Origin: Macrostomum lignano
Taxonomy: Eukaryota
Direction of reading: 5' to 3'
Assembly (NCBI GenBank): GCA_002269645.1
Contig: NIVC01000073.1
Location: 682,001-746,000, forward strand
Length of the DNA: 64,000 nucleotides
Position numbers and translations under genes: made by a program. Under the pieces are notes generated by a model, which ran no database searches, was not told the DNA's origin, and saw only the letters and a program-made list of their open reading frames with translations. Shown piece by piece: positions 1 to 36,409 of the stretch. The stretch's first letter is position 1. Every line of letters begins with the position of its first letter.

Positions 1-135
1 TACACGGCTAATCTGGCCGCGTTTCTCACCGTGAAACGAATGAAATCCCCTATTGAGAATGTTGAAGATCTGAGCAAACAGAATGAGATCATGTACGGCA
101 TTCTAGAGGGCGGGTCCACGTTTCACTTCTTTCAG
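1..135 (+). CDS. Ionotropic glutamate receptor (non-NMDA, kainate-like): M3/S2 exon, 5'-truncated by window
   Basis: Frame 1 reads [45 protein letters not shown] (SYTANLAAF gate motif, GGST ligand motif); donor CAG|GTGAGC at 135/136, phase 0. Confidence 0.95.
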
Positions 136-154
136 GTGAGCACGTTTTAGCGCC

Positions 155-1625
155 ACTGAACACCTACACTCTGGCGCCATAGACACCTATATTCAGGCGC
201 CATGCATAGACACCTATCACGCGCCATATGCACACACCTATATTCAGGCTCCATAGACACATCTATATTCTGGCGCCATAGACACCCAAAATTCTGGCGC
301 CATAGACAAACATATATTCAGACCCCATAGACACATCTATATTCTGGCGCCATAGACACCCAAAATTCTGGCGCCATAGACAAACATATATTCAGACCCC
401 ATAGACACCTATATTATGGCGCCATAGACACACGTATATTCTGGCGCCATAGACACCCAAAATTCTGGCGCCATAGACAAACATATATTCAGACCCCATA
501 GACACCTATATTCTGGCGTCATAGACACCTATATTCTGGCGCCATAGACATCTATATTCTGGCGCCATAGACACCCCTATATTCTGGCGCCATAGACACA
601 CCTATATTCTGACTCCATAGACACCTCTATATTCTGGCGCCATAGACACCTATATTCAGGCATCATAAGACACCTACAGTTGGGTTCGCGAGGAAAGGCT
701 CAATTCTCGTGAGATCGCGCGAGGGGTCTCGCTCGAATCTGTGTGTAACTCGTTTGCCATTGGCTGAGCCATTAAACTGGGGAAGGCTAAATTTGAGCGT
801 TGTTTGAGGTGGCTTGTTTGGAGAGGTTTAACCGCTTATTCGGTGTCCACCTTGACATTTTCTCCCAGTAGTTTAATGGCAACCCCTATCGTGTTGAGAC
901 ATTTTCCCCATCAATTCCCCATCCTGATACGAACTAGCAGGAATTTCACGTAGCTTGCAAATAAGTTGGACATCGTCTGACGGACAAGCAACGTATTGAT
1001 CGACATCCTGTCAAAGTTGGAGATTTTCTAAATCTAGCAAATTTCTGTATAGCTTGTACGAGACCTGATTCCCTCGTTTCCTCATTTCGCACACTATGCA
1101 CCAACCCCTATCCCAGGGGGTCTTCTCTCTCGATTCAGCCTCCAATCTCAATAAACGCTCAGCCAATGGCGAAAGAGTTACACACAGATTCTCTCGAATC
1201 TTGCAAATCTCTCGAGACTCGATTCTTTCCTCGCGAACCCAACTGTAAATTCTGGCGCCATAGACACCTTATATATTCTGGCGCCATAGACACCTTATAT
1301 ATTCTGGCGCCATAGACACCTTATATATTCTGGCGCCATAGACACCTTATATATTCTGGCGCCATAGACACCTTATACATTCTGGCGCCATAGACACCTT
1401 ATACATTCTGGCGCCATAGACACCTTATACATTCTGGCGCCATAGACACCTTATACATTCTGGCGCCATAGACACCTTATACATTCTGGCGCCATAGACA
1501 CCTTATACTTTCTGGCGCCATAGACACCTTATACATTCTGGCGCCATAGACACCTTATACTTTCTGGCGCCACAGACACCTTATACATTCTGGCGCCATA
1601 GACACCTTATACATTCTGGCGCCTC
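155..1625. repeat. ~26-bp minisatellite (CTGGCGCCATAGACACC core) interrupted by a MITE
   Basis: Heterogeneous units 155-676, homogeneous 26-bp units 1250-1625. Confidence 0.9.
677..1245. mobile_element. MITE, Tc1/mariner-pogo-like termini
   Basis: ~100-bp imperfect TIRs beginning CAGTTGGGTTCGCGAGGAAAG at both ends, flanked by TA (675-676, 1246-1247); no ORF. Confidence 0.85.
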
Positions 1626-1724
1626 CAAAACCCAATAGAGCCTAAATATAGGTGCTTCCAATCTCTAAAGAAATTTGCCGCCTATCACATTCTTCCGCTC
1701 CTCCCCATTTATCCTTTTCTCCAG

Positions 1725-1950
1725 AAAGCCACCATACCAACCTACAAAAGCATGTTCGATTTTATGTCGTCGAACTCGGCCAAGTGCTTTGTTAAAAGCA
1801 CGCCCGAAGGCATCGAACGGGTGCTGAACGAGAATTACGCTTTTATACTGGAATCTACTTGGAATGAGTACTATACTCAACGGAATTGCAAGCTGATGCA
1901 GGTTGGCGGGCTGCTGGACTCCAAGGGCTACGGAATCGGAATGCCGGCAG
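1725..1950 (+). CDS. iGluR S2 exon
   Basis: Acceptor TTTTCTCCAG|, reads [14 protein letters not shown]...[38 protein letters not shown]; donor G|GTGAGA, phase 1. Confidence 0.95.
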
Positions 1951-1959
1951 GTGAGATTG

Positions 1960-3232
1960 AGAATGGAGTGTCCTTGTTCTAGGATGGGTGTCCTCTTCTA
2001 GAATGGGGTGTCCACTTCTAGGATGGGGTGTTCACTTCTGGGATGGGTGTCCTCTTCTAGAATGCGGTGTCCACTTCTAGGATGGGGTGTCCACTTCTAG
2101 GCTGGGGCACACTTGTAGGATGGGGTGTCCACTTGTAGGATGGGGTGTCCACTTCTAGAGAATGGGGTGTCCACTTGTAGGATGGGGTGTCTACTTCTAG
2201 GATGGGTGTCCACTTCTAGGACAGGGTGTCCGATTTTAGGACAAGGTGTCCACTTCAAGGATGGGGTGTCCGATTCTAGGATGGGGTGTCCGATTCTAGG
2301 ATGGGTGTCCCTTCTAGAATGGGGTGTCCACTTGTAGGATGGGGTGTCTACTAGGATGGGTGTCCACTTCTAGGATGGGTGTCCTCTTCTAGAATGGGGT
2401 GTCCTCTTCTAGAATGGGGTGTCCACTTCTAGGATGGGGTGTTCACTTCTGGGATGGGTGTCCTCTTCTAGAATGGGGTGTCCACTTGTAGGATGGGTGT
2501 CCTCTTCTAGGATGGGGTGTCCACTTGTAGGATGGGGTGTCCACTTGTAGGATGGGTGTCCTCTTCTAGAATGGGGTGTCCACTTGTAGGATGGGGTGTC
2601 TACTTCTAGGATGGGTGTCCACTTCTAGGATGGGTGTCCTCTTCTAGAACAGGGTGTCCGATTTTAGGACAGGGTGTCCACTTCAAGGATGGGGTGTCCG
2701 ATTCTAGGATGGGTGTCCCTTCTAGAATGGGGTGTCCACTTGTAGGATGGGGTGTCTACTTCTAGGATGGGTGTCCACTTCTAGGATGGGTGTCCTCTTC
2801 TAGAATGGAGTGTCCTCTTCTAGAATGGGGTGTCCACTTGTAGGATGGGGTGTCCACTTGTAGGATGGGTGTCCTCTTCTAGAATGGGGTGTCCACTTGT
2901 AGGATGGGGTGTCTACTAGGATGGGTGTCCACTTCTAGGATGGGTGTCCTCTTCTAGAATGGAGTGTCCTCTTCTAGAATGGGGTGTCCACTTGTAGGAT
3001 GGGGTGTCCACTTGTAGGATGGGTGTCCTCTTCTAGAATGGGGTGTCCACTTGTAGGATGGGTGTCCTCTTCTAGGATGGGGTGTCCACTTGTAGGATGG
3101 GGTGTCCGCTTCTAGAACAGGGTGACCGATTTTAGGACAGGGTGTCCACTTCAAGGATGGGGTGTCCACTTGTAGTATGGGGTGTCCACTTCAAGGATGG
3201 GGTGTCCGATTCTAGGATGGGTTGTCCACTTC
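1960..3232. repeat. ~20-bp minisatellite (GGATGGGGTGTCCACTTCTA)
   Basis: Tandem array filling most of iGluR intron 1951-3704. Confidence 0.9.
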
Positions 3233-3704
3233 TCGGATTGGGGTTTCTCTCCAGGATTTATGAAGTAGAATTTCTTGATTACTACTACCCCGGAAGTGGA
3301 ATAATAAGTGCTTCATGGAATATCGACTTCAAAAACAAAGGTTTTAACAAAGCTTATAAATTCCAAACAAAAAATGGAAGCTAAGATTGTTGTTTAAAAA
3401 GTCTTTGCTGTTTTGCGACAAAAAAATGAAGGATTTTTGGTGCATTAATATTTGCACTTCTTTCGTTAGTTTTCAGTTGTAGATCTGATTTGATTTTAAA
3501 TAGATGTACCAGTACATCGCTTTAATACCGACTTGAAGATTTATTTTTTTGTTAAGTTATTTAAAATGATTTCCAAACTGCGGGCCATTTTTTGCTTCTC
3601 TTTTTGTTTCTCAATTAGTAGATTAGCTAGAAAAAAAAGTTAAATAGACTAGCTAACCTACTGTTGTGAGTAGCCAGTAGCAAACAATGCTATGAAATTT
3701 ACAG

Positions 3705-3970
3705 GTTCACCGTATGTAGACGTATTCTCGGAGACCATACTGGAACTGCAGAAGAGTCAAGCCATTGAGAGCCTGCGACAGAAGTGGTGGCGCAAGTTCA
3801 ACATTAGCAAACCGTGCGACGACACGGACGGCCCATCTGGCAATCGACATCCAACTAACGCGCTGGGCCTCGAACAGATTGGCGGCGCGTTTATCATCCT
3901 GACGGCTGGCATGCTGCTGAGCGTACTCTGTGCCGGCATCGAGTTCTGCTTCAAGCACATCAAACACTCA
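3705..3970 (+). CDS. iGluR S2-end + M4 exon (cassette 1)
   Basis: Phase-1 acceptor ACAG|GT; GSPYVDVFSETILELQKSQAIESLRQKWW...C...LGLEQIGGAFIILTAGMLLSVLCAGIEF; donor TCA|GTAAGC, phase 0. Confidence 0.95.
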
Positions 3971-4094
3971 GTAAGCGTTGGGTGGGACAGCTGAAGCCGA
4001 GCCAAGCTCTATGGGGATTCGCCTAGTCTATAAATAGATTTATTACTACTCGTATCTGCTGACATGTCTTGTGTGTACAGTCCTTATCTCGCAT

Positions 4095-4806
4095 CCTTCC
4101 GATTCATATCTCCGACAATTCATATCTCCGACAGTTCATATCTCCGACACTTCATATCTCCGACAATTCATATCTTCGACAATTCATATCTCCGACAATT
4201 CATATCTCCGACACTTCATATCTCCGACACTTCATGTCCCCGACAATTCATATCTCCGACACTTCATATCTCCGACAATTCATATCTCCGACACTTCATG
4301 TCCCCGACAATTCATATCTCCGACACTTCATATCTCCGACAATTCATATCTCCGACACTTCATATCTCCGACACTTCATATCTCCGACAATTCATATCTC
4401 CGACACTTCATATCTCCGACACTTCATATCCCCGACACTTCATATCTCCGACACTTCATATCTCCGACAATTCATATCTCCGACACTTCATGTCCCCGAC
4501 AATTCATATCTCCGACACTTCATATCTCCGACAATTCATATCTCCGACACTTCATATCTCCGACACTTCATATCTCCGACAATTCATATCTCCGACACTT
4601 CATATCTCCGACACTTCATATCTCCGACACTTCATATCTCCGACACTTCATATCTCCGACAATTCATATCTCCGACACTTCATATCTCCGACAATTCATA
4701 TCTCTGACACTTCATATCTCCGACACTTCATATCTCCGACAATTCATATCTCCGACACTTCATATCTCCGACACTTCATATCTCCGACAATTCATATCTC
4801 AGACAC
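4095..4806. repeat. 16-bp minisatellite (CATATCTCCGACACTT)
   Basis: Tandem array in intron 3971-5050; source of three artefactual ORFs. Confidence 0.9.
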
Positions 4807-5050
4807 TGATTGGCTAGCTGAAGGTTTTGCTCATATTTTTTAACCGCGTCTTTGTCTTACACTCCTTTTTGGAGGTACAGAGATAGAGCTACGGCCTGTC
4901 CTCTGCCTCTAATCAACTCCAAAACTCTTGCTCAGGCGCACTGGGTCGCCTAGGGTGGTGGTTTCACGGTTCCCCTTCCGATTTCAAATATACTGCTGCA
5001 TGTAAACTACTTCCTGTAGAAATATACCGTTAAACACCCCCTTTTCTCAG

Positions 5051-5407
5051 CCCGGCTCGCTCTGCGCCAACATGTGGGAGGAGCTGAAATTTGCTGTCCA
5101 ATGCTGTGTCTCCAGCAAGCGGCGCGCCTCACGTGACCTCTATCAGGCGGCCTACGCGGACGAACAGCCGCAGCTGGCGCAGCAGCCGCTGCAGGCCGGA
5201 CGACCAGCAGACGGCGCTTCCGCTGTTGCAGCCCTCGTCGACGCGCAGTCGGCCTCTTATTCCCTCGGCCAGCTGTCCAGACCGGACACTCTGCTGTCTG
5301 CTCAGCTGGCCAGTGCCAGCTCTTTCGGACACCGTCAGCAGCAGCAGCAGCAGCAGCATCAACGACCACCGAAGTATAACGATTGCGTACCTTCTACGCA
5401 GCTGTGA
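5051..5407 (+). CDS. iGluR C-terminal tail exon (cassette 1)
   Basis: Acceptor CTTTTCTCAG|, in frame PGSLCANMWEELKFAVQC... (similar to the GluK2 SFCSAMVEELRMSLKC segment), ends CVPSTQL-stop. Confidence 0.85.
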   Translation, partial: PGSLCANMWEELKFAVQCCVSSKRRASRDLYQAAYADEQPQLAQQPLQAGRPADGASAVAALVDAQSASYSLGQLSRPDTLLSAQLASASSFGHRQQQQQQQHQRPPKYNDCVPSTQL

Positions 5408-5703
5408 ATGTTTCCACACGAACTCATAACTAACAAAATTTGTGACTCAGCGTTTTTAGTCTCTTAGTCTCGTCTTTTGTGGTTGTTTCTGTTTTGTTGT
5501 ATAGCCTTATTTACTGTGTGTAATGAAGTCAATTCGCTTATTCTGGAGTAAACTCAGTTGAGGCAAAACCCTCCACGCTCTGTATATTTTATAGGCCAAG
5601 GGGCACGGTGGCCCGCGCATGTACATTACCGTACGTACTGCTAGCTAGGCTTACTAAACAAGCTCCACCCCTACCACGCGGTCCCACCCCATAAGTCATG
5701 ACA

Positions 5704-5716
5704 CTTTTCCCCTCTC
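5704..5716 (-). promoter_or_regulatory. Polypurine tract
   Basis: GAGAGGGGAAAAG abutting the 3' LTR. Confidence 0.85.
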
Positions 5717-5735
5717 AGAAGAAGTCCGCTTCCTA

Positions 5736-6915
5736 TCAATCACAGCTCCCGAGTTTCGAGTAGGTCAGCTTCTCAGGTGGCCGTCGCCGGCGTGCAGGCT
5801 GCAGTCCGCAGGGCGCGTCTGGCGGCTCCGGCTCCGGGTGCTCCGCGCCGGTCCCGGTCGAGTCCGCAGCTTCAGCTGGCTCGGTCCCGGCTGCCGGACC
5901 GTCAGGTTGGTCGCTCTCGACTCGCCGGCCCCGCAGTTGGTCGGCATGACGGCGCCAGGTCAGGCCGTCGCTCGTTTCGACTCGGAAGCTCAGCGGCCCA
6001 GTCTGCTCGAGAACTTTTGCTGGTTGCCAGGCCGCCGCATTAGGCCGGTAGTCCCTGGCCTAGGCCTCCGACCACGGCTCCTCCGGCAGCTCCCGCGACC
6101 GCCGGTCGTGCTGTCGTTTCTGGGCAGATTGCTCCCGCAGTACTCGATCCCGGGCTGACGGCCGCAGCAGGTCCATTCGAGTCCGGAGCTGCCGCTTCAG
6201 AAAGAGCTCCGCTGGTGTCCGACCGGTCGTTGGGTGCGGGCTAGCTCGGTAGCCCAGCAGCCAGTTGCACAGGCGGATGTCGAGGTCCGGCTGACTGCTC
6301 CGTGACGCCTCCATGGCCATCTTGAACGACTTCACCAGCCGTTCCACCAGTCCGTTGGTCTTGGCGTGATATGGACTGCTTCTTGTGTGGCGAATTCCAT
6401 TTGCTTTGCAGAAATCGCTAAATCCTTGACTGATGAATGCTGGACCGTTGTCCGATACCAGTTCTCTCGGCAGGCCCCATTGTGCAAACAACACTCGCAG
6501 CTTGCGAACCAGCTCGGCCGATTCGAGTGTTGACACGGCCTCCACATGCGGCCACTTTGAGTGCGCGTCGACTACGAGGAGAAACTGGCGGCCTCGAACC
6601 GGCCCGGCAAAGTCAACGTGGATGCGGTCCCAGGGCTGGTCTGGCCACACCCAGGGGTGCAGTGGAGCCAGCACCGGATGCAGCTTAACGGATTGGCAGG
6701 CTTGGCAGCTGCTGGCAACCGACTCGATGTCAGAATCCATTCCTGGCCACCAGACGAAGGTTCTGGCGACACTTTTCATCCGGGCCATGCCGAAATGTTC
6801 CACGTGTAACTCGCGCAGAACTCCAGGTCGCAACGCTTCCGGAACCAGCACGCGAGTTCCCCAGATCACGCAGCCGTCTTCCACGCTTAGTTCTAGTCGA
6901 CGACGAAAGTAGGGC
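5736..6915 (-). CDS. Integrase (one frameshift at its 5' side, in-frame TAG at 6060-6062)
   Basis: HVEH..CQAC zinc finger, RIHVDFAG, SDNG, NGLVER; continues after the TAG as ARDYR..W..V..GPLSFRV..WRRHADQLR to TGA at 5736. Confidence 0.9.
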
Positions 6916-8401
6916 TCGAGCCCCGGGGAACCGACTCTGGCCAGCCAGTCATTATCATCCGGAGAACATCTCGGAGCTCGTCATCTCGCTTCGTTGCTGC
7001 CGCTACATCCGCCGCCGTCAATGGAAACTCGCCCGTCAGCTGACAGACCCGATCGTCGTCGTCTGGGCTGTCGTCCTTCATCTGCAGGGGCAGGCGAGAC
7101 AGGCCGTCTGCGTTGCTGTGCTGAGCAGTCTTGCGGAACCGGATGCTGTAGCTGTACCCTGACAGCAGCAGTGCCCATCTCTGAAGTCGCCCTGCTGCAG
7201 TCGGCGAGATGCCAACCTTCGGTCCGAAAATCGTCGTCAACGGCTGATGATCCGTAATTATCGTGAAGCTCCGGCCGAACAGGTACTGGTGGAACCGCTT
7301 GATGGCGAACACGATGGCGAGGGCTTCTTTCTCAATTTGTGAGTAATTTCGCTCCGCTGCTGACAGCGTCCTTGAAGCAAAAGTCACCGGCCGTTCCGAG
7401 CCGTCCTCCATCGTGTGGGACAGCACCGCGCCGATGCCGACCGATGAAGCATCCGCGGCCACCACCACTGGAAGCTGCTCGTTGAAATGCGTCAGCACGC
7501 TGTCCGAACTCAGTTCTTGCTTAAGATGGTCCCAGGCTCGGTCCTCCGTCTCAGCCCACCGCCAGTCCGTCTCCTTCCTCAAAAGTTTATACAGAGGAGC
7601 AGCGATCGTGGAGAAGTCCTTGACATGTCGAGCATAGTAGTTTGCGAGGCCCAAGAATGATCGCAGCTCTGATACTGTCGCTGGCCTCGGGCTGTTGACT
7701 ATTGCTTCCACCTTCTGAGGCAGCTTCTTGACTCCGTCCTTGCTCAGCAACGAGCCCAGGTATTCGACTTCTTCTTGCAGAAATTTGCACTTGATTCGCT
7801 TCAGCCGCAGGCCCGCCGCTCTCAGCCTGGTCAGTACCTCGCGAAGCGCTGCTAGGTGCTCACTCATTGACGGACCGGACACCAGGATGTCATCAATGCG
7901 GCAACAGACTCCCGGCACGCCCTTCAAAAGTGTTTCCATCAGCCTCTGGCAAATCGCAGGAGCCGAACTGACGCCAAATGGCAACCGGAGGTACTCGAAA
8001 AGCCCTTTATGTGTGTTGATGGTCGTCAGCTTGCAGCTCTCTTCGTCGAGTGGAAACTGAAGATAACATTGTGACAGATCGAGTTTTGAGAACAGCTGAC
8101 CCCGTCCCATCTGCTCGTAAAGCTCTTCAGGCGTAGGCAGCGGGTACTGGTCGATGTGGAGCTGAGGGTTCAACGTCAGTTTATAGTCGCCGCACAGTCG
8201 GACTGAGCCGTCCGCCTTGAGTACCGGAACCACTGGCGTAGCCCACTCGCTGTAGGTCACCGGGCGGATGATGCCTTTGTTGAGCATGTCCTGGAGCTCG
8301 AGCTCAAGCTTGTCCCGCACTGCGAATGGCACGGGTCTGGCCTTGCAGAATCGAGGCTGTGCGTCACTTTTAAGTCTCAGTGCGACTGTCTGATCCTTCA
8401 A
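6893..8401 (-). CDS. Reverse transcriptase + RNase H
   Basis: WATPVVPVLK, RLCGDYK, LPFGVSSAP, RIDDIL, DASSVGIG, YSQIEKE, TDHQPL, NADGLSRL. Confidence 0.95.
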   Translation of the reverse strand: MKDQTVALRLKSDAQPRFCKARPVPFAVRDKLELELQDMLNKGIIRPVTYSEWATPVVPVLKADGSVRLCGDYKLTLNPQLHIDQYPLPTPEELYEQMGRGQLFSKLDLSQCYLQFPLDEESCKLTTINTHKGLFEYLRLPFGVSSAPAICQRLMETLLKGVPGVCCRIDDILVSGPSMSEHLAALREVLTRLRAAGLRLKRIKCKFLQEEVEYLGSLLSKDGVKKLPQKVEAIVNSPRPATVSELRSFLGLANYYARHVKDFSTIAAPLYKLLRKETDWRWAETEDRAWDHLKQELSSDSVLTHFNEQLPVVVAADASSVGIGAVLSHTMEDGSERPVTFASRTLSAAERNYSQIEKEALAIVFAIKRFHQYLFGRSFTIITDHQPLTTIFGPKVGISPTAAGRLQRWALLLSGYSYSIRFRKTAQHSNADGLSRLPLQMKDDSPDDDDRVCQLTGEFPLTAADVAAATKRDDELRDVLRMIMTGWPESVPRGSSPTFVVD

Positions 8402-9612
8402 CTGCCCAGGCTCTCGTCGAAAACATCAGCGAACTCCTCCAGCATCTGGTCGAGAGGCCCGCTGTTCTGCGCCGGCGCCTGGCTGATCTGGTTGGCAAAC
8501 AACCGAGTCCAGTTGAGTCGCACTTTTTCCAGCCAATTGCGTCCTAGCAATGGGCAGGCTCCGGTCTGACTGGTGACCACCAGCGGCAGCTTATCATGCT
8601 GTCTTCCGTCGTAGTTGACCCTGACCTCGGCTGTTCCCTTGACTTGTATTGGCTCGCCCGTCCAGGTCCGGAGTCGCAGGCGTGTTGGTGTCAGCGGAGG
8701 TCGTCCGAGCTGCTTCCACACCGACTCCGGTACGAGGCTGACGCAGGCACCGGTGTCCAGCTGCATGGTGAGGGGCTGGTCATTCACCAGCAGGCTTACG
8801 CTGATCTTCTTGGCCGATGCAGTGACTTGCGAAATCCAGCCAGTTGCTGCTTCCTCCTCCTCTTCCGTTTGCATTGCGCGCGCTGGTCCGTTCTCTGGCC
8901 GTCCGGCTTTCGTTGTGCTGGAGGCTTTCTTGGCTGAGCGGCAAACTTTCTGCAGGTGTCCAACTTTCCCGCAGTTGTGGCACTTTGCGGTCCTGAAGTG
9001 GCAGGCTGCCGACAGGTGGCCTTTCAATCCGCACCTGTAGCACGCCTTAGAGTCTGGCGCTACCTGCTGGACTGAGCTGACCTCTGAGCTCGATTTCCAC
9101 TGCTCAGTTTCCGACTTAGCAATCTCCGCCGCGAGGGCAATTTTCTTGGCCGTATCCAGCGTGAGCTTCTCCTCCATCAGGAGTCGCTGCTGTGTCCGCT
9201 GGTCCCGAAGACCACAAACGAAACAGTCTCGGAGAGCTTCTTCTCGAAACCCCCCGAACTCGCACGAATCGGCCAGATTCCGCAGCGCAGCCAGAAATTG
9301 AGCAGCCGTCTCTCCGTCCTTTTGTGCTCGCTTGTAGAACTTGAACCGTTCAGCGATTACTGGCTTCTTCGGTTTGAAGTACTTTTGAAGGTGCTCGGTG
9401 AGGGCGCTGTATTGCAGATCTGTTGGCTTGGTCGGACTGCAGAGATCCCGCAGGACTGCGTAGCATCGTTCGCCAATCAATGTCAGAAACACTGCCTTCT
9501 TCTTGTCGTCGCCTTCTATGCCGTTTGCAAGCATGTAAGAGTCCATTCGCTCTTGATAGGCGTCCCAATCTTTGCCTTCCTCGTAAGGCTCTAGTTGTCC
9601 AACTGAAGCCAT
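8398..9612 (-). CDS. Gag (two CCHC knuckles) + aspartic protease
   Basis: CYRCGLKGHLSAAC and CHNCGKVGHLQKVC; LDTGA; ATG at 9612 inside the PBS. Confidence 0.92.
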   Translation of the reverse strand: MASVGQLEPYEEGKDWDAYQERMDSYMLANGIEGDDKKKAVFLTLIGERCYAVLRDLCSPTKPTDLQYSALTEHLQKYFKPKKPVIAERFKFYKRAQKDGETAAQFLAALRNLADSCEFGGFREEALRDCFVCGLRDQRTQQRLLMEEKLTLDTAKKIALAAEIAKSETEQWKSSSEVSSVQQVAPDSKACYRCGLKGHLSAACHFRTAKCHNCGKVGHLQKVCRSAKKASSTTKAGRPENGPARAMQTEEEEEAATGWISQVTASAKKISVSLLVNDQPLTMQLDTGACVSLVPESVWKQLGRPPLTPTRLRLRTWTGEPIQVKGTAEVRVNYDGRQHDKLPLVVTSQTGACPLLGRNWLEKVRLNWTRLFANQISQAPAQNSGPLDQMLEEFADVFDESLGS

Positions 9613-9623
9613 CCTCGTCGCCA
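9609..9623 (-). promoter_or_regulatory. Primer-binding site (tRNA-Ser GCU type)
   Basis: TGGCGACGAGGATGG two nt inside the 5' LTR; complementary to the 3' end (...CCATCCTCGTCGCCA) of eukaryotic tRNA-Ser(GCU) as I recall it. Confidence 0.8.
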
Positions 9624-10204
9624 ATTGTAATGAAGTCAATTCGCTTATTCTGGAGTAAACTCAGTTGAGGCAAAACCCTCCACGCTCTGTATATTTTATA
9701 GGCCAAGGGGCACGGTGGCCCGCGCATGTACATTACCGTACGTACTGCTAGCTAGGCTTACTAAACAAGCTCCACCCCTACCACGCGGTCCCACCCCATA
9801 AGTCATGACACTGTGGAATCTGTAAAATATATTGCAAGTTTTTTTGGGTACGTTACTTACTAACACTTATGTTGCATATAATGCTGCAAGGCATTTTAGT
9901 GTCTATAAAGTTTTTCCTGTTTGCATTCTTATTTCTATCATTTCCTAACATTCGGTTTGTTTCTTGCACGATATACAAGAGAAATTTAAGAAAGTGCTTT
10001 TGTTTTAACAAAATTATATGCATGAAATGCACTTTAGAAGTATACTCGTGGCTAGAATTCTAAATGAAAATTTATTACAATGACCAAAAAATAATTTGGG
10101 GAAATTCTGTAAGGAGACTGCAGATGTACTTCTAGATTCGATGATATTGAAATAGTATAGGGCTGTTTGACCCGGTGACAGGATAGGCTGTATGTAGCCT
10201 CGAT

Positions 10205-11515
10205 GACTGCAAAGGCTGTAGCTCTCAGTGAAAGAAAAGGCTGTAGTCCCAGCGACAGTACAGGCTGTAGCCTGTAGTCTGTAGCCCCGGTGAAAGCAAA
10301 GGCTGTAGCTCTCAGTGAAATAAAAGGCTGTAGTCCCAGCGACAGTACAGGCTGTAGCCTGTAGTCTGTAGCCCCGGTGAAAGCAAAGGCTGTAGCTCTC
10401 AGTGAAATAAAAGGCTGTAGTCCCAGCGACAGTACAGGCTGTAGCCTGTAGTCTGTAGCCCCGGTGAAAGCAAAGGCTGTAGCTCTCAGTGAAATAAAAG
10501 GCTGTAGTCCCAGCGACAGTACAGGCTGTAGCCTGTAGTCTGTAGCCCCGGTGAAAGCAAAGGCTGTAGCTCTCAGTGACAGTACAGGTTGTAGCCTGTA
10601 GCCTGTAGCCCCGGTGAAAGCAAAGGCTGTAGCTCTCAGTGAAATAAAAGGCTGTAGTCCCAGCGACAGTACAGGCTGTAGCCTGTAGTCTGTAGCCCCG
10701 GTGAAAGCAAAGGCTGTAGCTCTCAGTGAAATAAAAGGCTGTAGTCCCAGCGACAGTACAGGCTGTAGCCTGTAGTCTGTAGCCCCGGTGAAAGCAAAGG
10801 CTGTAGCCCCCAGTGACAGCAAAGGCTGTAGCCCCCAGTGACAGCAAAGGCTGTAGCCCCCAGTGACAGCAAAGGCTGTAGCCCCAGTGACAGCAAAGGC
10901 TGTAGCCCCCAGTGACAGCAAAGGCTGTAGCCCCCAGTGACAGCAAAGGCTGTAGCCCCCAGTGACAGCAAAGGCTGTAGCCCCCAGTGACAGCAAAGGC
11001 TGTAGCCCCCAGTGACAGCAAAGGCTGTAGCCCCCAGTGACAGCAAAGGCTGTAGCCCCCAGTGACAGCAAAGGCTGTAGCCCCCAGTGACAGCAAAGGC
11101 TGTAGCCCCAGTGACAGCAAAGGCTGTAGCCCCCAGTGACAGCAAAGGCTGTAGCCCCTAGTGACAGCAAAGGCTGTAGCCCCCAGTGACAGCAAAGGCT
11201 GTAGCCCCCAGTGACAGCAAAGGCTGTAGCCCCCAGTGACAGCAAAGGCTGTAGCCCCAGTGACAGCAAAGGCTGTAGCCCCCAGTGACAGCAAAGGCTG
11301 TAGCCCCAGTGACAGCAAAGGCTGTAGCCCCCAGTGACAGCAAAGGCTGTAGCCCCAGTGACAGCAAAGGCTGTAGCCCCAGTGACAGCAAAGGCTGTAG
11401 CCCCCAGTGACAGCAAAGGCTGTAGCCCCCAGTGACAGCAAAGGCTGTAGCCCCCAGTGACAGCAAAGGCTGTAGCCCCCAGTGACAGCAAAGGCTGTAG
11501 CCCCCGGTGACAGCA
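10205..11515. repeat. Composite satellite: 87-bp higher-order unit grading into 24/25-bp monomer (GGCTGTAGCCCCCAGTGACAGCAAA)
   Basis: 87-bp period 10205-10800; 25-bp period 10800-11515. Confidence 0.9.
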
Positions 11516-11536
11516 CACTACCATTGATAATTGTAG

Positions 11537-11877
11537 GTTCCCCCTACACCGACCTGCTCTCCGAGGAGATTCTGCTGATGCAGCAGTCACAGCAGCTGGT
11601 CAGGCTAAAAATGGCCTACCTCCATCCGGCCAAGGCTGACCTCAGCTGCGCCAGCTCCGGTCATCGCAGCCAAGGAATGCTCGAGCTGTCCATCGAGCAC
11701 GTTGGCGGCGCTTTCCTAGCCCTGCTGACAGGATTAGCGGCTGCCGGCGCTGCTGGCGGGATTGAACTGCTGCTCATGAACTCGGCTGCGGATGGAGGCC
11801 GGCGAAGGCGGCTGCTAAGAGACATGGATCGCGGATTTCAGCCAAGGAGGAGGGTCAGCGGTGCCGAATCGCTTCGG
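11537..11877 (+). CDS. Second, paralogous iGluR S2-end + M4 exon (cassette 2)
   Basis: Same phase-1 acceptor (TTGTAG|GT TCC CCC TAC); GSPYTDLLSEEILLMQQSQQLVRLK...C...LSIEHVGGAFLALLTGLAAAGAAGGIEL; donor CGG|GTGAGA at 11877 (read-through stop at 11932-11934 if unspliced). Confidence 0.75.
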
Positions 11878-11989
11878 GTGAGATTGAATGGGAGGAAAGA
11901 TGATCAGTTGGTTGATGGTGCATACATTTTATGAGTAAAAGAGGAGAATACAGAAATATAGAGATAGCTTGAGTCATGGGAGTAAGAGA

Positions 11990-12229
11990 CAGACACGGAA
12001 AGATTAAAGAGACATAAAGAGAGGGATAAAAAAGACACGGAAAGATTAAAGAGACATAAAGAGAGGGATAAAAAAGACACGGAAAGATTAAAGAGACATA
12101 AAGAGAGGGATAAAAAAGACACGGAGAGATAAACGAGACATGGAGAGAAAGAGGAGAGACATGGAAAGAGATATGAGAGACATGGAGAGAGATAAGAGAG
12201 ACATGGAGAGAGAGAGATAACAGAGGCAT

Positions 12230-12321
<92 letters not shown>
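11990..12321. repeat. 42-bp x3 repeat plus (GA)n microsatellite
   Basis: 42-bp units from 11992; pure GA run ~12233-12321. Confidence 0.9.
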
Positions 12322-12325
<4 letters not shown>

Positions 12326-12556
12326 AAGACATGGCGAGAGAGATGAAAGACGTGGAGAGAGCCGCAGACAAAATAGAAGGAAAGAAGAGTGTGGAGCTGC
12401 TCTCAGGAAAAAGGTAATTAAAGTAAAGTCTTAATTATTGCGTAACTATTGGGAGATAGAGTTGGGAAAAAGATTTCAAAGTTCTCATGCTGGTGTTATA
12501 CACATAGGAATCTTGGAATTTCAACAAATCTCAATGTACTCGCAATCTCACGCTAG

Positions 12557-12760
12557 GAAGCGAGGCTGCTTAGCTCGACACAGTTGGTCTCTGAGGACCA
12601 AGTGCAGATTGACTCTGCAGATGCTGAGGCTGAGCCTTCCGCAGTGCTGCAGCATCCTAGCAACCCAAGTGATGGCGGAACAGGCGCGCAATATTGTCTA
12701 ATGGATCATTGTCGTAGATTTACACAAGTGAACTTTGAGTCCAAGCAGACTCTTGTCTGA
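12557..12760 (+). CDS. Putative C-tail exon of iGluR cassette 2
   Basis: Phase-0 acceptor CTCACGCTAG|, open 67 codons EARLLSSTQLVSEDQVQ...VNFESKQTLV-stop; phase fits the 11877 donor. Confidence 0.55.
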   Translation, partial: EARLLSSTQLVSEDQVQIDSADAEAEPSAVLQHPSNPSDGGTGAQYCLMDHCRRFTQVNFESKQTLV

Positions 12761-13099: not shown

Positions 13100-13630
13100 C
13101 TTTATCTCTCCACCCTGCGTCTTGGTCGCCCACCCCACTGCCAGCGCTCGCTTTTCTGTCCTTATTTTTACGTTTTCTCTCTCCAGCCTACTTGTTTATG
13201 TTTTTATCTGTCTGTCCCTTTTCCCTGCGCGCACTCTTATCTATTTTCTAACCCCCCTTTTTGCGGTCATAGTTTTAACATTAATTTACTCTTATCTCTC
13301 CACCCTGCCTCTTGGTCGCCCACCCCACTCGTTTCTCTGTCCTTATTTTTACGTTTTCTCTCTCCAGCCTAATTGCTCATGTTTTTATCTGTCTGTCCCT
13401 CTCTCCCCTGCGCGCACTCTTATCGATTTTCTAACCCCCCTTTTTGCGGTCATAGTTTTAATTTTAATTTAATCTTATCTCTCCACCCTGCCTCTTGGTC
13501 GCCCACCCCACTCGTTTTTCTGTCCTTATTTTTACGTTTTCTCTCTCCAGCCTAATTGTTCATGTTTTTATCTGTCTGTCCCTCTCTCCCCTGCGCGCAC
13601 TCTTATCGATTTTCTGACCCCCTTTTGCGC
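13100..13630. repeat. ~187-bp tandem repeat, about 3 copies
   Basis: TTATCTCTCCACCCTGC.TCTTGGTCGCCCACCCCAC recurs near 13102, 13292, 13476. Confidence 0.8.
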
Positions 13631-14127
13631 TCATATAGTTTTAATATATACGAGTTTTAAGTTTTAAGGGCTGTGCCCCCATGTATTCCTGCGAAATCGT
13701 TTGCTCTCGCCAGTTCAACAAAAATGTCTTCTCAGTATAGTATGCGTTGCTAAGGTCTAAACTAACAATACAAGCTCAGTTCAGTGCGAAAAGATCTTCT
13801 AAACTTCAGCTGCTAACGTTGCTACCGTTTTACAATATTAGAATAAATCTCTGTTTAACGAAAGCAGTAAAAGCATTCAGAAATGATGAATAGCGTGCAA
13901 TGAACTCCAGGAAGTGAAGCAGTGCACAAGCGGAAGCACACAATAGCTCCCATTGTTAGATGCAGCCACATCACTATGCAATACTGTTTCGCACTATATA
14001 TACGGTTCTCAGTTCTCATAGGCAGTTCACAAGCAGCCTGTCTCAGTCCTAAGTCTATTGTAGCACTTCTATAATATAATATACTGAGCTTCAGTGAGTA
14101 GGCTAGTCTCAAGCTCCTCATAGCAAC

Positions 14128-17025
14128 ATGCTCGCCACGGCCGAGATGGATCAGGAACGGCTCAACTTGGTGAACCGCTTGGCGGAGGAGGCCGTACGGA
14201 TGCGTCTGCTGGTGCTGAGCCTACGCGACGAGGAGATCGCTTTGCTGGAAAATGACTCAAAGATGCTGGACGAAGTGATGGAGAAGATCAAAGCGAATAA
14301 AAAGAAGAATTATCTGCAGAATGTCAAGTACAAGTCGAGTAAGACGTCTTGCTAATGAATTGTGTGTCAAATACTGAACCTTAGAATGGTACGATTAGGA
14401 CTTCAGATTTCAGAATTAAGAAGTAAGGAGGATGATAAAAAGAAAATTATGAATTCTCAACTGAGGGCTTAGGAATCGGTGATCAGGGATCGGGTATCAG
14501 GAATCGAGAATCAAAAATCACTAATTGGGAATCGGAAATCGAGAATCAAAAATCACTAATTGGGAATCGGGAAACGGGAGTCACATATTGGGAATCGGGA
14601 ATCAGGAATCAGGAATCGAGAATCACTAATTGGGAATTGGGAATCAGGAATCGAGAATCACTAATTGGGAATCGAGAATCACTAATTGGGAATCGGGAAT
14701 CAGGAATCGAGAATCACTAATTGGGAATCGGGAATCAGGAATCGAGAATCACTAATTGGGAATCGGAAAACGAGAATCACTAATTGGGAATCGGGAATCG
14801 GGAATCACTAATTGGGAATCGGAAAACGAGAATCACTAATTGGGAATCGGGAATCGGGAATCGAGAATCACTAATTGGGAATCGGGAATCAGGAATCGAG
14901 AATCACTAATTGGGAATCGGGAGTCAAGGATCGGAGATAACGAATCCTTGATTAGGAATAAAATATCAACGATATTCTTTAAACGGTCTCAACCGCACGC
15001 GCGACAGAGAAGGCGCGCGAAGAGTTTGAGGAGCGGCAGCTCCGGTGGCGCCAGCGCGACGCCTCGGAGCCCGACTGGCGGCTGGAGCTGCCGCCGCGAC
15101 AACCGCAGATTCGATTGAACATGCGGCTGCTCTGGCCGGGACAAAAGTGCATCGGGCACTATAGGCAGCTTTATAGGCAGCTGATTCGAAGGCCGGAATC
15201 CAGATTGGGCGAGAAGTGCATCCAGGTAAGACGGAAGTTCAAAAGTCTGTATAAGGACTTTTACAAACTCTGAGCTTAATATTGCCGGACACAACTTCAC
15301 TATTGATAGAAACTATTGAGCTGACAAATTTTAATCTTTTGAAGGAATGAAGAGGTATCGCTTGCTTGTGAACCGCCCCTTAACGAACTCCATCTACATT
15401 TATACTTTTACACTTGCAAAGCACAATGTCACTCTCCACAGTTCTAAAAAATGCTAAATTAAATGCTATATTTAAATTCCTAAATTTAAAAGGCTCTCCG
15501 GGCCCGTTTCAACAACCGCTGTCAAGACGTCGACGGCGAACTGGATAAATCAGCGAGCGGAGTTGTGGACAGGGACGGCGTTTCAAGCCGAGAAGAGAGC
15601 TCGGACTTTCTGCAAGATCATAGGTACCTGTCTGACCTGAGCAAGGAGCTGTTTCAGACCAGCTCAAAGCAGCAGGTCTGCCACTGGCATGCCGATAGGC
15701 AACAATTAGTGCGAACTGAGATGCAGGTAATCTATATGTAATTAATTATATTTGTCATTCCTTATAAAAATAGAACAGGACAAGAGAACTGACAAGAGTT
15801 GTGTGAACTTCTACATGCGTGTCGAAAACAATGTGAGTTTTGAGCTCGCGATAAGTCAGGACTGGTTTTTAGGAGGGACTTCACTTCACTTGTGATTCCT
15901 GCAAGCTGAGACAGAGGGTTGGCGCCTTTCTATCCCTTTTCAGGCCAATCAGTGCGGCCGGCGGGACTGGCAGATTGGGGTGGTGGGGCTTGCCCAGCTA
16001 GACTGGGGGAAGGGAGAGAGAAAGAAAACTGCTCAGCCAATCAGCGAGCGCCGAGAGACATGACTTTTAAATATTGTCGATTTAACTTCGGTTGCGGACA
16101 CAATATCTGCGAGTTGACACACTTAATTTGTAATTTTATCTAATCCAACAAACAAAACCGAATCATTTCGTCAGGAACGGGCGGCGCACAGAATTCTCAG
16201 TCAGATTGCGGAAACTCGCGAATCAATCCAGCACTGGCCGTCCCTACCGCCGTCTGAACGAACTCGCCAGCTCCTCGACGACTGCCGGATAAAGCGACAA
16301 CGGCGAGAGACTGGGAAGTCTAACAGGTAAACAGAATTTATAACTCCTTTAATATTATGCTGCTTTAAATGGCAATTAGCTTCATTGTCTCACATTTTTA
16401 CAGATATTCAGAAATACTCCATGTATCTATGCGCGATTCAAACTTGGCAATGCAACAGCAGCGCCAACAAACCAACAAGCCACCTAGAAAACAGCACCTG
16501 AAGCAGTACAACCGTCAACTAGACCGATACCTGAAACCGCTGACCGAATCAAATAAGCGATCACTTTCTCCGTTGCCTGACGATGATACGGAAGTGTCAA
16601 AAGTACACCGTCATCCTAATAGTACCTCTGTAACTAGTGATATGAAAAAGAATGACGGCGGCGGCATCAAAGAGAATGACGGCGGCGACATAAAAAAGAA
16701 TGACGGCGGCGAGATCAAAGAGAATGACGGCGGCGAGATCAAAGAGAATAACGGCGGCGACTTCAAAGAGAATGACGGCGGTGAGATCAAAGAGAATAAA
16801 TTAGACGGCGAGATCGAAGAGAACGATGGCGGCGAGATCCAACAGAATGACAGTGGTAAGAAGAAACCGAATGACAGCGACGACGCTAAAGGTGATGACG
16901 AGAACGAGACTGCGGTGTGGCGCGAGGTGCTGAGCTGCAAGTACATCCGAGGCTACGAGCCACCGGAGGCACAGCTGCCAGATGAACAATCGGCCATTGA
17001 TTTTGTATTCGGCGGGGCGATTTGA
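14128..17025 (+). CDS. Unknown protein, 6 exons, ~496 aa
   Basis: Exons 14128-14338, 15008-15225, 15493-15726, 15779-15832, 16175-16326, 16404-17025; all GT-AG, phases 1/0/0/0/2 compatible, sum 1491 nt without internal stop; AATAAA at 17295. Exon-2 acceptor is weak. Confidence 0.65.
14480..14925. repeat. GGGAATC/GAGAATCACTAATT minisatellite
   Basis: Variable 21-33-bp units in intron 1 of the unknown gene. Confidence 0.85.
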
Positions 17026-17368: not shown

Positions 17369-20300
17369 ATGAGACTTAAAGCTTTCCTGGCATTGAGCCT
17401 CTGTTGCGCGATTGCCAGTGGCAAAGAAATTCGCGTTGAGACCGACTTGGCCGCTTACGTCGGCCTGTTGCTTCAAGGAGATGGCAGCGACAATGACACG
17501 ACTCGCGGCTTCTTCGGGGTGCCCTACGCCCAGCCTCCAACCGGTCAGCTCCGATTTGCGCCTCCGTTGCCATGGCAACCGCCGCGTAGCAACGAACCCG
17601 GCGCCAAGCCCGAGTTGATGGCCAACGCGTCGAAGCCGCGGTGCCTCCAGCTGGCAGCTGCTGGTTCGAGTCTGCGCATGTCCGAAGATTGCTTGTACTT
17701 GAACATCCAGACTCCGGTGCCCCATCAGGCCGACTCAAGCCGACCGGTGATTGCTTGGCTGCACTCCGGATTCCTGGAAACTGGCGGCATCTCCGAGCCT
17801 GAGGCGCCGCTTGGCCGCCAGTTGGTGGCGCGGCAGCGGCTGCTGCTGGTTGAGGTCGCCTTCCGGCTGGGAGTCCTCGGCTTCCTTAGGCCTCCCGGAA
17901 CCACCGGGGGCAACTGGGGACTGCTGGACCAGCAGATGGCGCTAAGCTGGGTGAGATGTTGGCTGGGTGAGATGCGGGTTGGGTGAGATGCGGATTGGGT
18001 GAGATGTGGGTTGGGTGAGATGCGGATTGGGTGAGATGCGGATTGGGTGAGATGCGGGCTGGTTGAGATGCGGGTTGGGTGAGATGCGGGCCGGGTGAGA
18101 TATCACACCAAGAGCGTAATCTTACTTTTCAGATTAGCTCTAACATTCGTGCCTTTGGAGGCGACGCCGGCAGCGTGACGCTGGCTGGCGCGAGTTACGG
18201 CGCCTCGGCGACGGGTCTCCATCTCTTCAGCGCCGGCAGCAGTCGACTCTTTCACAGGGCGCGTTGCTTGGCGGCTCGCCGCTGGCGCCGTGGCTTCTCG
18301 TCACCGACGACGCCGCTGCTTCCGCTATCGCGGACGACTTCACCGCCCGAGCCTCCTGCCGCCGCGCCAACGACTCGGAAACGCTCCGCTGTCTTCGGGA
18401 CGCCGGTGCTGACGCCCTAACAGCGCTGCAGCCGCCGGCCGACCGGCCGCTCGACGTCGCCGCCTTCCCGGTCGTCATTGACGGCCGCTTCATCACTGAC
18501 CGCCCGGCACCGGGCAGCCTCGCCACTCCGAAGCCTGTCGTCCTCGGAGTCGCCGAAAGCGACAGCGACTCGCTCGCCGTTCGCGCCATCGGACACCGAA
18601 ACGTTTCCGGCCTCGCCGGCCAGCTGTATCAGGACGTACTGGACGAGGCGTTTCGTTTCTTCCCCAGCTTCCCTCGCCGTCCCTCCGCCACGGGCCGCCG
18701 GCTTCTGTCCGGCCGCCTCACCGCCTTCCCAAGCGCCTCCGCTGCTCGGCTCAACAAGCAGCTGCTGGCTCGGGGCCTCGGCCTGTGGCATTCCGCGTGT
18801 CCGGTGAACCAACTGTCCGACTGGCTCTGCGGCGCATCTGCGCCCGTCTTCGTCTACCAGTTTGCCGAAGCTCCGCATCCCGGCGGCGACTCCACAGACG
18901 GCCTCGGCGAGGACGCGGCCTACTTCGCTGGCGAGCCGCTGGGCGACCAGAGGTGAAGCTCGCAAGAGTGCAAATCGAATGGGTGCATGGGTTTCTATGA
19001 GTGGAGTCCTATGGGTCTTATTATACCTTCTTGCTTCCTATTTGGTGTTTACTGCGTCAAATTTGGTGCGTTGCAAAGAGCCCAGCAGAGTTCATATAAC
19101 AAAAACAACAACAACAATTTACGCAACCCCGCATGCAAAGTCACAAAGCAGGGTGCGTCTGATGGCAGAGTAAACAGTCGGGCGCCCCGGGGTTGCATCG
19201 GAGGCAGTCCACGCATCGACGGGTTTGGGCCTGACCCCACCTGAATGGGCCCTGCAAGGTGAGCAGCAGGACGTCCTGAACAGGTTGGGGGCAGTAGCTC
19301 TCGGCCCAGATCACGTGGCCCGCCAGTTGAAGTCGCCGCCTGCGCAGGATGATGGACGGGCGCTGCAGCTTGGCCAGATTGCACAGGGCCTCGGTCCCGA
19401 CACTCTCGTCAGCTCGAAAGGCCGCATGGAGCAGCCCTGAGTGCGCCGAGTCCAACTGCTGCTCCAGCGTCCACGTCTCGGCGTTGTATAGCAGGACAGT
19501 ATATAAACCATAGACTAGTGTGCATTCACTGTCCTCTCTCTGTCCACCAGGCTGATTTCAGCGTATGGTCCTCTCTGCGCCATTCATTACTTTTACCATA
19601 CATGCCTTCCAGCTGTGGTCCGAATTGATCGCCTTTAAAATAAATTGATTTCTGTTGTCTATGGCTTTTCCTGGCTACGGTTTGTCTACGTAAAATTTTT
19701 GCCAGGCTCGACAACACGTCAGACTTCCAACGGGCCTCGCACCAATTTAAATGAACGAAACAACCGAATTCCACGCAGTTTTAAAGGTGTAGTTATATTT
19801 CGTCGTGTAGTCTCAACGGTATGAATCGGTGCGCCTGGCACTGCATAACTGTTGAATGCTACTCTTTACAGGTAGACAGAAATTGCTGAAATATATCGAT
19901 GAATACGAGCTATAATCAGTTTTGTTTTTACAATTTCGCAGGTACGACAGAGCGCAGCGCGAACTGTCAAGCCTCATGACGGCTGCCCTGGCCGAGTTCT
20001 GTCATGATGGCAGAATCAGCTCGTTTAACTGGCCGGCTGTGTCTCTGGCCGAGCTGCAGTTCCTCCGACTGTCCAGCACCACCGGTCAGGAGCTGTCCAT
20101 CGGCGGTCTGAACAGACAGGACTGCCAGTTCTGGCAGGACGAGCTGCCCTGGGTGAACTCCTTGGACACCGGCGCGGATGGCGGCACCACCGCCCAGACA
20201 AGCAGGCCGCCAGATCTGGAATCCGAGTTCTGGGCCAGGTGCAATTCAACGGTGAACACCATCAGCCTTGTTGCTCTGTCTGTGGCTGGAGGTCTTCTTC

Positions 20301-21889: not shown

Positions 21890-22306
21890 CGCATCTCACC
21901 CAGCCTGCATCTCACCCAGCCCGCATCTCACCCAGCCTGCATCTCACCCAGCCCGCATCTCACCCAACCCACATCTCACCCAACCCGCATCTCACCCAAC
22001 CCGCATCTCACCCAACCCGCATCTCACCCAACCCGCATCTCACCCAACCCGCATCTCACCCAGCCCGCATCTCACCCAGCCTGCATCTCACCCAGCGCGC
22101 ATCTCACCCAGCCTGCATCTCACCCAGCCCGCATCTCACCCAACCCACATCTCACCCAACCCGCATCTCACCCAACCCGCATCTCAACCAACCCGCATCT
22201 CACCCAACCCGCATCTCACCCAGCCCGCATCTCACCCAGCCCGCATCTCACCCAGCCCGCATCTCACGCAACCCGCATCTCACCCAGCCCGCATCTCACC
22301 CAGCCC
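21890..22306. repeat. 16-bp repeat GCATCTCACCCA(A/G)CCC
   Basis: Reverse complement of the 17951-18100 unit. Confidence 0.92.
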
Positions 22307-35870: not shown

Positions 35871-36409
35871 GTTCAAGTGACTGAGAAGTCACAAAAGTTG
35901 CGGTCTAAAATAGATTGATGCAACTTACAGACATCAGGTTTGTCACCCAGAATGCACACCAGCTGGTACATGGATGTACCGAAACCCGATCAAAAGGACA
36001 AATATTGTACTTTAAAAAAAGGCGAACAAAAAGTTAGCCAATAGGCCTCATTTTCTCCATCAGTTTTAATTGATAATTACAGAATTGTGCCTAACTAGCT
36101 GTTTGATGTCAGACATAGGGTGATATTGTTGTACTGAGCAACAAACCAGCAGTTAATCCAAGCGCACAAGCCCGGTAACTCGCAGTTTTTATGCAGCAAT
36201 TAGTTTTAATGCGGGACAGAGCAGCGTAATTGTTTCTTCGCCATGGGCGAGAGCATTAATCAGCCATGCCGGCTGCCAAGCAAATATCCAGGCCACAGCT
36301 GGATAGTATATTGATACGACACAGAATTTTCCTGTGTTTCAAATGTTTTGCTGCTGCATAAATTCTGCAAGTGCTCATTAAATATGACGCTTTAAAACAG
36401 TGGCAGTGG

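Follow-up and report, generated by a model that had tools for sequence, protein, structure and literature searches.

The question raised by this locus is whether a single glutamate receptor gene of the flatworm Macrostomum lignano possesses two alternative 3′ ends, the second of which would exchange the last membrane helix M4. The analyzed window comprises 64,000 nt of contig NIVC01000073.1 (positions 682,001 to 746,000 of the forward strand; assembly GCA_002269645.1). Reading and translation of the plus strand delineated, from position 1 to 5407, the 3′ portion of a gene for an ionotropic glutamate receptor (iGluR). Beyond it, on the same strand, lies a second exon homologous to the penultimate exon of this gene, with a candidate terminal exon of its own. 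We tentatively interpret these sequences, called cassette 2 (c2) in the following, as a used alternative 3′-terminal cassette, which would give rise to a second and probably minor mRNA of the receptor gene. Judged from the genomic sequence, we assign this reading a probability of about 0.47.

Two exons would be shared by both isoforms. Exon e0 (1..135, +) is truncated by the start of the window. Its first residues fall inside the motif that closes M3 (SYTANLAAF); it continues into the beginning of the S2 lobe up to ...FFQ and leaves in phase 0 at the donor gtgagc. Exon e1 (1725..1950, +; acceptor ctccag, donor gtgaga) encodes a further part of S2, including the cysteine in RNCKL, and ends one base into a glycine codon (phase 1). 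The junctions between e0, e1 and the two exons of the first cassette, c1a and c1b, all have AG/GT dinucleotides and compatible phases, and the receptor matches the Pfam family Lig_chan with an e-value of 4e-13. The UniRef protein P0001 is 93% identical across the whole conceptual product (isoform 1), contains 100% of the e0 residues and runs through the junction of e1 and c1a with the continuation GSPYVD, confirming 1950>3705. In another M. lignano protein, A0A1I8JEP0 (P0003), the C-terminal end lies exactly at GIGMPA, the end of e1, while A0A1I8GAL0 (P0165), also from M. lignano, continues after its e1 part with a c1a-like exon that again begins with GSPYVD. These latter two proteins belong to one 90% cluster and show ~80–87% identity over the shared exons.

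Cassette 1 consists of c1a (3705..3970, +) and the terminal exon c1b (5051..5407, +). After the acceptor ttacag, c1a completes the glycine codon begun in e1, and the exon, for which the initial annotation had stated no end coordinate, is left in phase 0 at 3971 (donor gtaagc). Its translation, GSPYVD...KWW...C...GGAFIILTAGMLLSVLCAGIEFCFKHIKHS, comprises the end of S2 with the KWW-containing helices (GSPYVDVFSETILELQKSQAIESLRQKWW), the second disulfide cysteine, the linker, M4 (GGAFIILTAGMLLSVLCAGIEF) and KHIKHS. Exon c1b (acceptor tctcag, stop codon at 5405–5407) contributes the kainate-type membrane-proximal motif GSLCANMWEELKFAVQC, a Q-rich tail and the end -STQL*, which is of the class I PDZ type; its equivalent is found in P0001. 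The best PDB matches of c1a in phmmer were GluK3, GluK1 and GluK5 (E 1e-18), and the scores ranked GluK3, GluK1, GluK5 and GluK2 (67–70 bits) above GluD1 (58) and GluA (55). In addition, the tail motif S-x-C-x-x-M-x-x-E-L after M4 is present, with GSLCANMWEELKFAVQC of c1b aligning to VSVCQEMMTELRSIILC of GluK4; cassette 2 lacks this motif. Because of this ranking and the tail motif, we classify the gene, of which the 3′ part lies within the window, as a kainate-type iGluR.

At the junction of c1a and c1b, P0001 possesses 12 additional residues (VSVGRTGSPKGA replacing P). Reading through the c1a donor in the window (3971–3994) leads to a stop after 7 codons. Either this boundary is variable between copies, or the P0001 model is imperfect.

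The first exon of cassette 2, c2a (11537..11877, +; acceptor ttgtag, donor gtgaga), enters in phase 1 and leaves in phase 0, like c1a. It reads GSPYTD...KMAYL...C...GGAFLALLTGLAAAGAAGGIELLL...RRRVSGAESLR (full translation: GSPYTDLLSEEILLMQQSQQLVRLKMAYLHPAKADLSCASSGHRSQGMLELSIEHVGGAFLALLTGLAAAGAAGGIELLLMNSAADGGRRRRLLRDMDRGFQPRRRVSGAESLR) and covers the end of S2, the cysteine, the linker, M4 and the proximal tail. Compared to c1a, KMAYL stands in place of KWW and the conserved cysteine is retained. The M4 segment (GGAFLALLTGLAAAGAAGGIELLL) is rich in alanine and glycine, with a maximum Kyte-Doolittle value of 1.71 (usual threshold 1.6) versus 2.25 for c1a, and the proximal tail is rich in arginine (RRRR, PRRRVSG). 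By BLASTP, 28 of 81 residues are identical between the two cassettes (E 8e-11); the amino-acid identity of c1a and c2a is 31–35%, at lengths of 266 and 341 nt. Extended by 13 shared residues, c2a aligned end to end with the S2-end/M4 region of GluK5 (E 2e-10), GluD1 and GluK2/3, its PDB scores being highest for GluK5 (44 bits), followed by GluD1 (36), GluK2/3 (35) and GluA2 (25). The Pfam Lig_chan profile is matched up to its final position by either isoform (47.6 vs 49.7 bits). AlphaFold2, supplied with family alignments, modeled c2a as two S2 helices plus a long M4 helix, as in c1a, with block pLDDT (predicted local distance difference test) values of 85/83/74 and 88/87 for c2a versus 76/81/74 and 85/94 for c1a; as the alignment drives the fold, this indicates compatibility only and does not distinguish a working exon from a young relic.

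How could such an exon be translated? Exon c2a lies on the same strand as c1a and is in frame with e1 only. Both cassettes are entered in phase 1, with AG/GT sites and in-frame stops, and a join from c1a (phase 0 out) to c2a (phase 1 in) would be out of frame. Using both conceptual isoforms as tblastn queries, we found no other iGluR exons elsewhere in the 64 kb. The 14 residues preceding the first methionine of c2a are its best-conserved stretch, with 9 of 14 identical to c1a (GSPY.D..SE.IL). Therefore, c2a must be translated from its first base, for which an upstream phase-1 exon is needed. An initial annotation of this DNA had described two paralogous phase-1 exons after 1725–1950, the second without upstream exons of its own, and a gap between them filled by a retrotransposon, AT-rich DNA and a satellite. 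These observations hold: the homology is supported by BLASTP, phases and splice-site dinucleotides can be read directly, the tblastn search was empty across the window, and in the gap a long terminal repeat (LTR) element is accompanied by a satellite and by an AT-rich segment of ~380 bp. As a separate observation, 12 bases are identical at the donors of e1 (1949–1961) and c2a (11876–11888), namely GGTGAGATTGA plus the following A. They may be due to chance or be the trace of a duplication breakpoint.

The duplication must be old, as synonymous sites between c1a and c2a are near saturation: the proportion of synonymous differences (pS) is 0.59, corresponding to a synonymous divergence (dS) of ~1.15, and the same codon is used at only 10 of 28 identical residues. 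For the same reason, the ratio of nonsynonymous to synonymous divergence (dN/dS) of ~0.64 between both exons says little and was discarded as uninformative. With dS between c1 and c2 above 1 and the c1a of the A0A1I8GAL0 paralogue 74% identical, the second cassette should be older than that paralogue. Six rare states are common to c1a and c2a (E130, S138, Q139, A182, G198 and I199). We rejected them as proof of a local duplication, because the homologous exon of Schistocephalus also has the GSPY, SE and SQ states; up to 8 non-majority states are common to c2a and other family members.

To judge selection on c2a, we used an alignment with 100 relatives from outside Macrostomum, in which a column was considered conserved at a level of at least 90%. 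Exon c2a has the family majority residue at 15 of 26 conserved columns versus 10 of 51 others (Fisher p=0.001). The retained family residues include G-S, D, I-L, Q and the disulfide cysteine as well as GG.F, L, G, L and E in M4, and the near-invariant W-W is conservatively replaced by Y-L. The GC content at third codon positions (GC3) is 0.70 in c2a and ~0.69 in c1a and c1b, versus a GC content of 0.31–0.40 in the flanking unique non-coding DNA, and GC drops to 0.39 right past the c2a donor. When neutral decay of c1a to the identity level of c2a was simulated, 4.8% of the runs stayed free of stops, with substitutions as the only changes and indels uncounted. Exon c2a thus does not resemble a pseudogene fragment: 114 codons are open, the AG/GT sites are intact and the identities are concentrated at conserved columns, features that a very young relic would also display. 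Several independent measures, from homology to composition and conservation, indicate that c2a is, or until very recently was, a real coding exon, and it bears signs of long-term purifying selection.

On this basis, we propose that an old tandem duplication of the 3′-terminal module (end of S2, M4 and tail) could have generated two cassettes in series. The canonical mRNA is spliced 1950>3705 and 3970>5051 and polyadenylated downstream of 5407. We infer a second mRNA in which cassette 1 and its poly(A) site are skipped by the junction 1950>11537, and which would end either with c2b (12557–12760) or at a read-through stop at 11934. The choice between the cassettes would result from competition between splicing and polyadenylation. 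In isoform 2, the pore and the bulk of the ligand-binding domain would stay unaltered. Exchanged would be the final two helices of S2 (the flip/flop region, at the dimer interface of the ligand-binding domain), the linker from S2 to M4, M4 itself and the entire tail. By inference from other iGluRs, effects on desensitization, subunit assembly, trafficking or anchoring might be expected.

The proposed terminal exon c2b (12557..12760, +; stop codon at 12758–12760) is a stop-to-stop open reading frame (ORF) of 67 codons behind the acceptor gctag. The in-frame TAG upstream of it is the proposed acceptor itself, further in-frame AGs inside it (12584, 12596, 12608 and others) are equally possible acceptors, and its GC3 is 0.48 versus 0.69–0.70 in c1a, c1b and c2a. 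Its C-terminus -KQTLV* is a class I PDZ-type ending, like the -STQL of c1b, and this suggestive ending is the sole feature speaking for c2b. Alternatively, if the c2a donor (11878) remained unused, 18 more codons (VRLNGRKDDQLVDGAYIL) would follow in the read-through ending (11878..11934, +), with the stop at 11932–11934. Poly(A) hexamers are available for either ending of cassette 2, with ATTAAA located at 12003–12087, past the read-through stop, and at 12798, past c2b.

The initial annotation had assigned a phase-0 terminal exon to each cassette, which is borne out for c1b (5051–5407) and doubtful for c2b, given its stop-to-stop ORF and low GC3. Likewise, of the postulated swap of the S2 end, M4 and the whole tail, the first two parts agree with the homology of c2a, and the tail part hangs on the weak c2b. 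The term mutually exclusive switch does not fit, because each cassette would bring a separate stop and poly(A) site and there is no common downstream exon; c1b carries a stop, and no selector/docking pairing was detected (see below). That interpretation therefore appears plausible but unproven, and misnamed.

Several observations weigh against a used cassette. There was nothing close to c2 among the 5.8 billion and 1.8 billion proteins searched, whether isoform 2 as a whole or c2 alone served as the query. Exon c2a deviates at 11 of 26 highly conserved positions, versus 6 of 26 for c1a, and forms the longest branch, with a mean family identity of 28% compared to 40% for c1a; this long branch could reflect relaxed constraint. 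The nearest relative of c2a is not specifically c1a, which ranked 4th of 104. Both acceptors of cassette 2 are TAG, while every other acceptor in the gene is CAG, and c2b is poorly supported, its boundary being a guess rather than an observation. Furthermore, use of c2a demands a 9.6-kb intron into which an entire terminal exon falls, together with poly(A) hexamers and a retrotransposon. Finally, no second cassette was found within 10 kb downstream in the homologous Schistocephalus locus, and the Paragonimus locus showed an e1-like exon and only one partial match, to the S2 end of the cassette, without a second copy in the ~12.4 kb after it; both are very distant relatives.

The searches in detail gave the following picture. 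With c2 alone, a word-indexed protein search to E 10 returned no match, and neither did a metagenome scan with c2a. HMMER against the 1.8 billion representatives found only P0164, a 40% identical iGluR exon, and one repeat protein. The absence of c2 from these collections weighs little, because Macrostomum is represented in them by just three members of this gene family. Among the M. lignano 3′ ends in the databases, two are of the c1 type (P0001, P0165) and zero of the c2 type, a balance that would fit a minor c2 isoform better than a full-length paralogue of the c2 type. The M4 exon of P0164 is the closest database match to c2a. Its contig L001 (Logan, run SRR29215647) encodes a eukaryotic iGluR at 1049–1719, in which a 56-nt intron precedes GSEY and matches the phase-1 position of the M. 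lignano gene exactly. We rejected P0164 as an orthologue of c2, since L001 has a single cassette and its upstream exon is only 46% identical. The 96% coverage of isoform 2 by GRIK4 was also rejected, because the alignment of the tail is gappy and insignificant. At the homologous Schistocephalus locus, an e1-like and a c1a-like exon are divided at the identical boundary. Judging from the Schistocephalus, Paragonimus and L001 loci, the intron position between e1 and the cassette is therefore ancient, which says little about Macrostomum.

The alternative that survives best is that c2a, with or without c2b, is an orphaned relic: the 3′ remnant of an old tandem paralogue or an abandoned cassette, outside any mRNA and too young to have acquired disabling mutations. 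We consider this a serious possibility, albeit on the less likely side. The signs of selection on c2a are compatible with it, as they record past and not present function, and we estimate that a 340-nt exon stays open over ~2–4% neutral divergence. The loss of the near-invariant WW, the weakly coding appearance of c2b and the lack of a match to the c2 protein in the searched collections would also agree with a relic, as would the finding that c2a is no nearer to c1a than to kainate-type receptors of other flatworms or mollusks. The M. lignano genome was recently duplicated, with 180 Mb in blocks at least 95% identical (PMC5730564), and in such a redundant genome the loss of one paralogue copy would be tolerated. 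However, no degenerate upstream exons were found by tblastn in 5408–11536. Without the inserted retrotransposon, c2a lies ~1.8 kb from the c1b stop, so that a deletion would have had to remove a multi-exon 5′ part yet spare both neighbors. Moreover, a full-length homeologue of the c2 type would be expected and was not found, whereas two M. lignano models of the c1 type were. Intact relics are short-lived and working cassettes persist; the intactness of c2a therefore favors function.

An assembly artefact is improbable. In this scenario, two paralogous loci would have been joined, or a tandem pair collapsed, in the satellite at 10193–11515, and c2 would belong to another gene. A candidate join does exist in this 1.3-kb array only 21 nt from c2a, and the M. 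lignano genome, more than half of which consists of repeats, is difficult to assemble (PMC5730564). Yet long reads easily span an array of 1.3 kb, and it is flanked by unique sequence on both sides. Similar-sized satellites, each different, occur in every intron of the receptor gene, and a satellite adjoining an exon is therefore normal here. Still less probable is a separate small gene, with a spliced leader joined to 11537 and a single-pass protein (S2 remnant, M4 and tail) starting at Met15: the in-frame ATG at codon 15 of c2a and the frequency of trans-splicing in M. lignano (38.8% of genes, with ~7% of transcripts being polycistronic precursors; PMC5730564) would permit it, but the 14 codons before this ATG are the best conserved of c2a, hence translated, and require an upstream coding exon, the product would be without a signal peptide, and no precedent is known to us.

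As to the interval between the two cassettes, the c1b stop is followed by 111 nt of unique DNA and then by an LTR retrotransposon (5519..9810, −), antisense to the receptor, with gag (zf-CCHC, aspartyl protease), reverse transcriptase-RNase H and integrase distributed over three ORFs, the reading frame being broken near 8400 and again near 6890. Its LTRs of ~185 bp are 100% identical and the target-site duplication CTGTG is found at 5514–5518 and 9811–9815, indicating a very recent insertion, which may be polymorphic. The AT-rich unique DNA beyond it (9816..10192, +; GC 0.32) contains weak poly(A) hexamer variants only. There is no poly(A) hexamer between the c1b stop and the LTR element, which therefore probably splits the 3′ untranslated region of cassette 1 in this haplotype; the AT-rich segment is probably the continuation of this region. 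The satellite (10193..11515) is an array of 87-nt units that gives way to 25-nt units (CTGTAGCCCCCAGTGACAGCAAAGG) and stops 21 nt short of c2a. The first canonical AATAAA past the c1b stop occurs within it, in each 87-nt unit at 10319–10730.

Each intron, as well as the downstream spacer, contains its own unrelated satellite (160–676, 1249–1623, 1977–3244, 4103–4807, 10193–11515, 11971–12361 and 13102–13647). Across the receptor gene the unit sizes are 25–26, 20, 16, 25/87, 21–42/GA and 183 nt. The 25/26-nt satellite of the first intron contains an insert of ~570 bp (676–1248) resembling a miniature inverted-repeat transposable element, with perfect terminal inverted repeats of ~22 bp (ACAGTTGGGTTCGCGAGGAAAG). 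Further downstream, an ATG-initiated ORF (14129–14340, +; MLATAEMDQERLNLVNRLAEE...) extends up to a gtaaga site; on inspection by eye it was taken for the first exon of a following gene, which bounds the receptor gene on its 3′ side. At 17369–18956 (+), two ORFs have hits to PF00135, the carboxylesterase family (E 2e-39 and 7e-9). Dispersed or inverted repeats unrelated to the receptor pair 50235–51951 with 58546–60265, 17946–18101 with 21893–22304, 26082–27470 with 30014–30332, and 36407–36979 with 45360–45708; one pair measures 1.7 kb at 84% identity.

What would follow if cassette 2 were used? One gene might produce, via two old 3′ cassettes, two isoforms differing in gating, M4-dependent assembly and anchoring, which we suggest with more reserve than the use of the cassette as such. 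M4 is the peripheral helix needed for tetramer assembly and surface expression of iGluRs. Cassette 2 would then provide a natural exchange of M4 and linker on a constant core of pore and ligand-binding domain, in a flatworm amenable to transgenesis, and an independent case of receptor diversity arising from tandem exon duplication. Under this two-isoform reading, diversity at the S2 end would have originated independently of vertebrate flip/flop. We know of no earlier splice-controlled exchange of M4 in an iGluR, and no C-terminal substitution including M4 was described for an iGluR in the literature searched. To our knowledge, the vertebrate iGluR splice variants that are known or were found in this literature affect the segment before M4 or the tail after it, never M4. 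If cassette 2 is a relic, the locus only illustrates how gene fragments turn over in a genome that is rich in repeats and was recently duplicated.

Several known systems can be compared to this arrangement. As with a truncated tandem paralogue, a complete paralogue has next to it a part of a gene for which 5′ exons are lacking. Unlike a pseudogene fragment, c2a is without a stop, frameshift or lost splice site, its substitutions avoid family-invariant positions and its composition is coding-like. The flip/flop exons of AMPA receptors are internal exons of 115 nt, encoding 38 amino acids at the S2 end, that tune desensitization and lie before M4 (PMC8257547); the initial annotation was right that they stop before M4. 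As in flip/flop, the duplication concerns the helices at the end of S2 together with the linker to M4, to which the first ~40 residues of c1a and c2a are equivalent. In contrast, flip and flop are of equal length, with differences at 8–10 of 38 residues; both precede a common M4 exon, and they strictly exclude one another, whereas c1a and c2a measure 266 and 341 nt, are ~31–35% identical, include M4 and have no common downstream exon. The longest complementarity between the intron 1951–3704 and the DNA upstream of c2a, which could represent selector/docking pairing, was 9 nt and not above that of shuffled sequences; such pairing is not obligatory, as none is known for flip/flop (PMC8257547).

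Alternative tails that differ in trafficking and PDZ motifs, as proposed here, are also found in GluK1-2a/b/c, GluK2a/b and GluN1 C1/C2/C2′. These kainate and NMDA receptor variants start past M4, whereas the exchange by c2 would extend to M4 and to a portion of the ligand-binding domain. The RRRR and RRRVS sequences of c2a are reminiscent of the C1 cassette of GluN1 with its RRR retention and phosphorylation sites.

C-terminal substitutions derived from tandem exon duplication number 77 in human, including the last two exons of GNAO1 (PMC8373072). NECTIN2 presents a multi-exon C-terminal swap in which similarity is left only around the transmembrane helix, with PDZ motifs at both ends (PMC8373072). 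The events in GNAO1 and NECTIN2 are backed by transcripts, peptides and conservation, while c2 is a candidate identified from genomic DNA. The layout is the same: homologous sets of 3′ exons in tandem within one gene, each with its own stop, for which splicing would be coupled to alternative polyadenylation. The likeness to NECTIN2 extends further, as the homology of both cassettes is weak outside the transmembrane helix and both proposed tails have PDZ-type ends (-TQL and -TLV).

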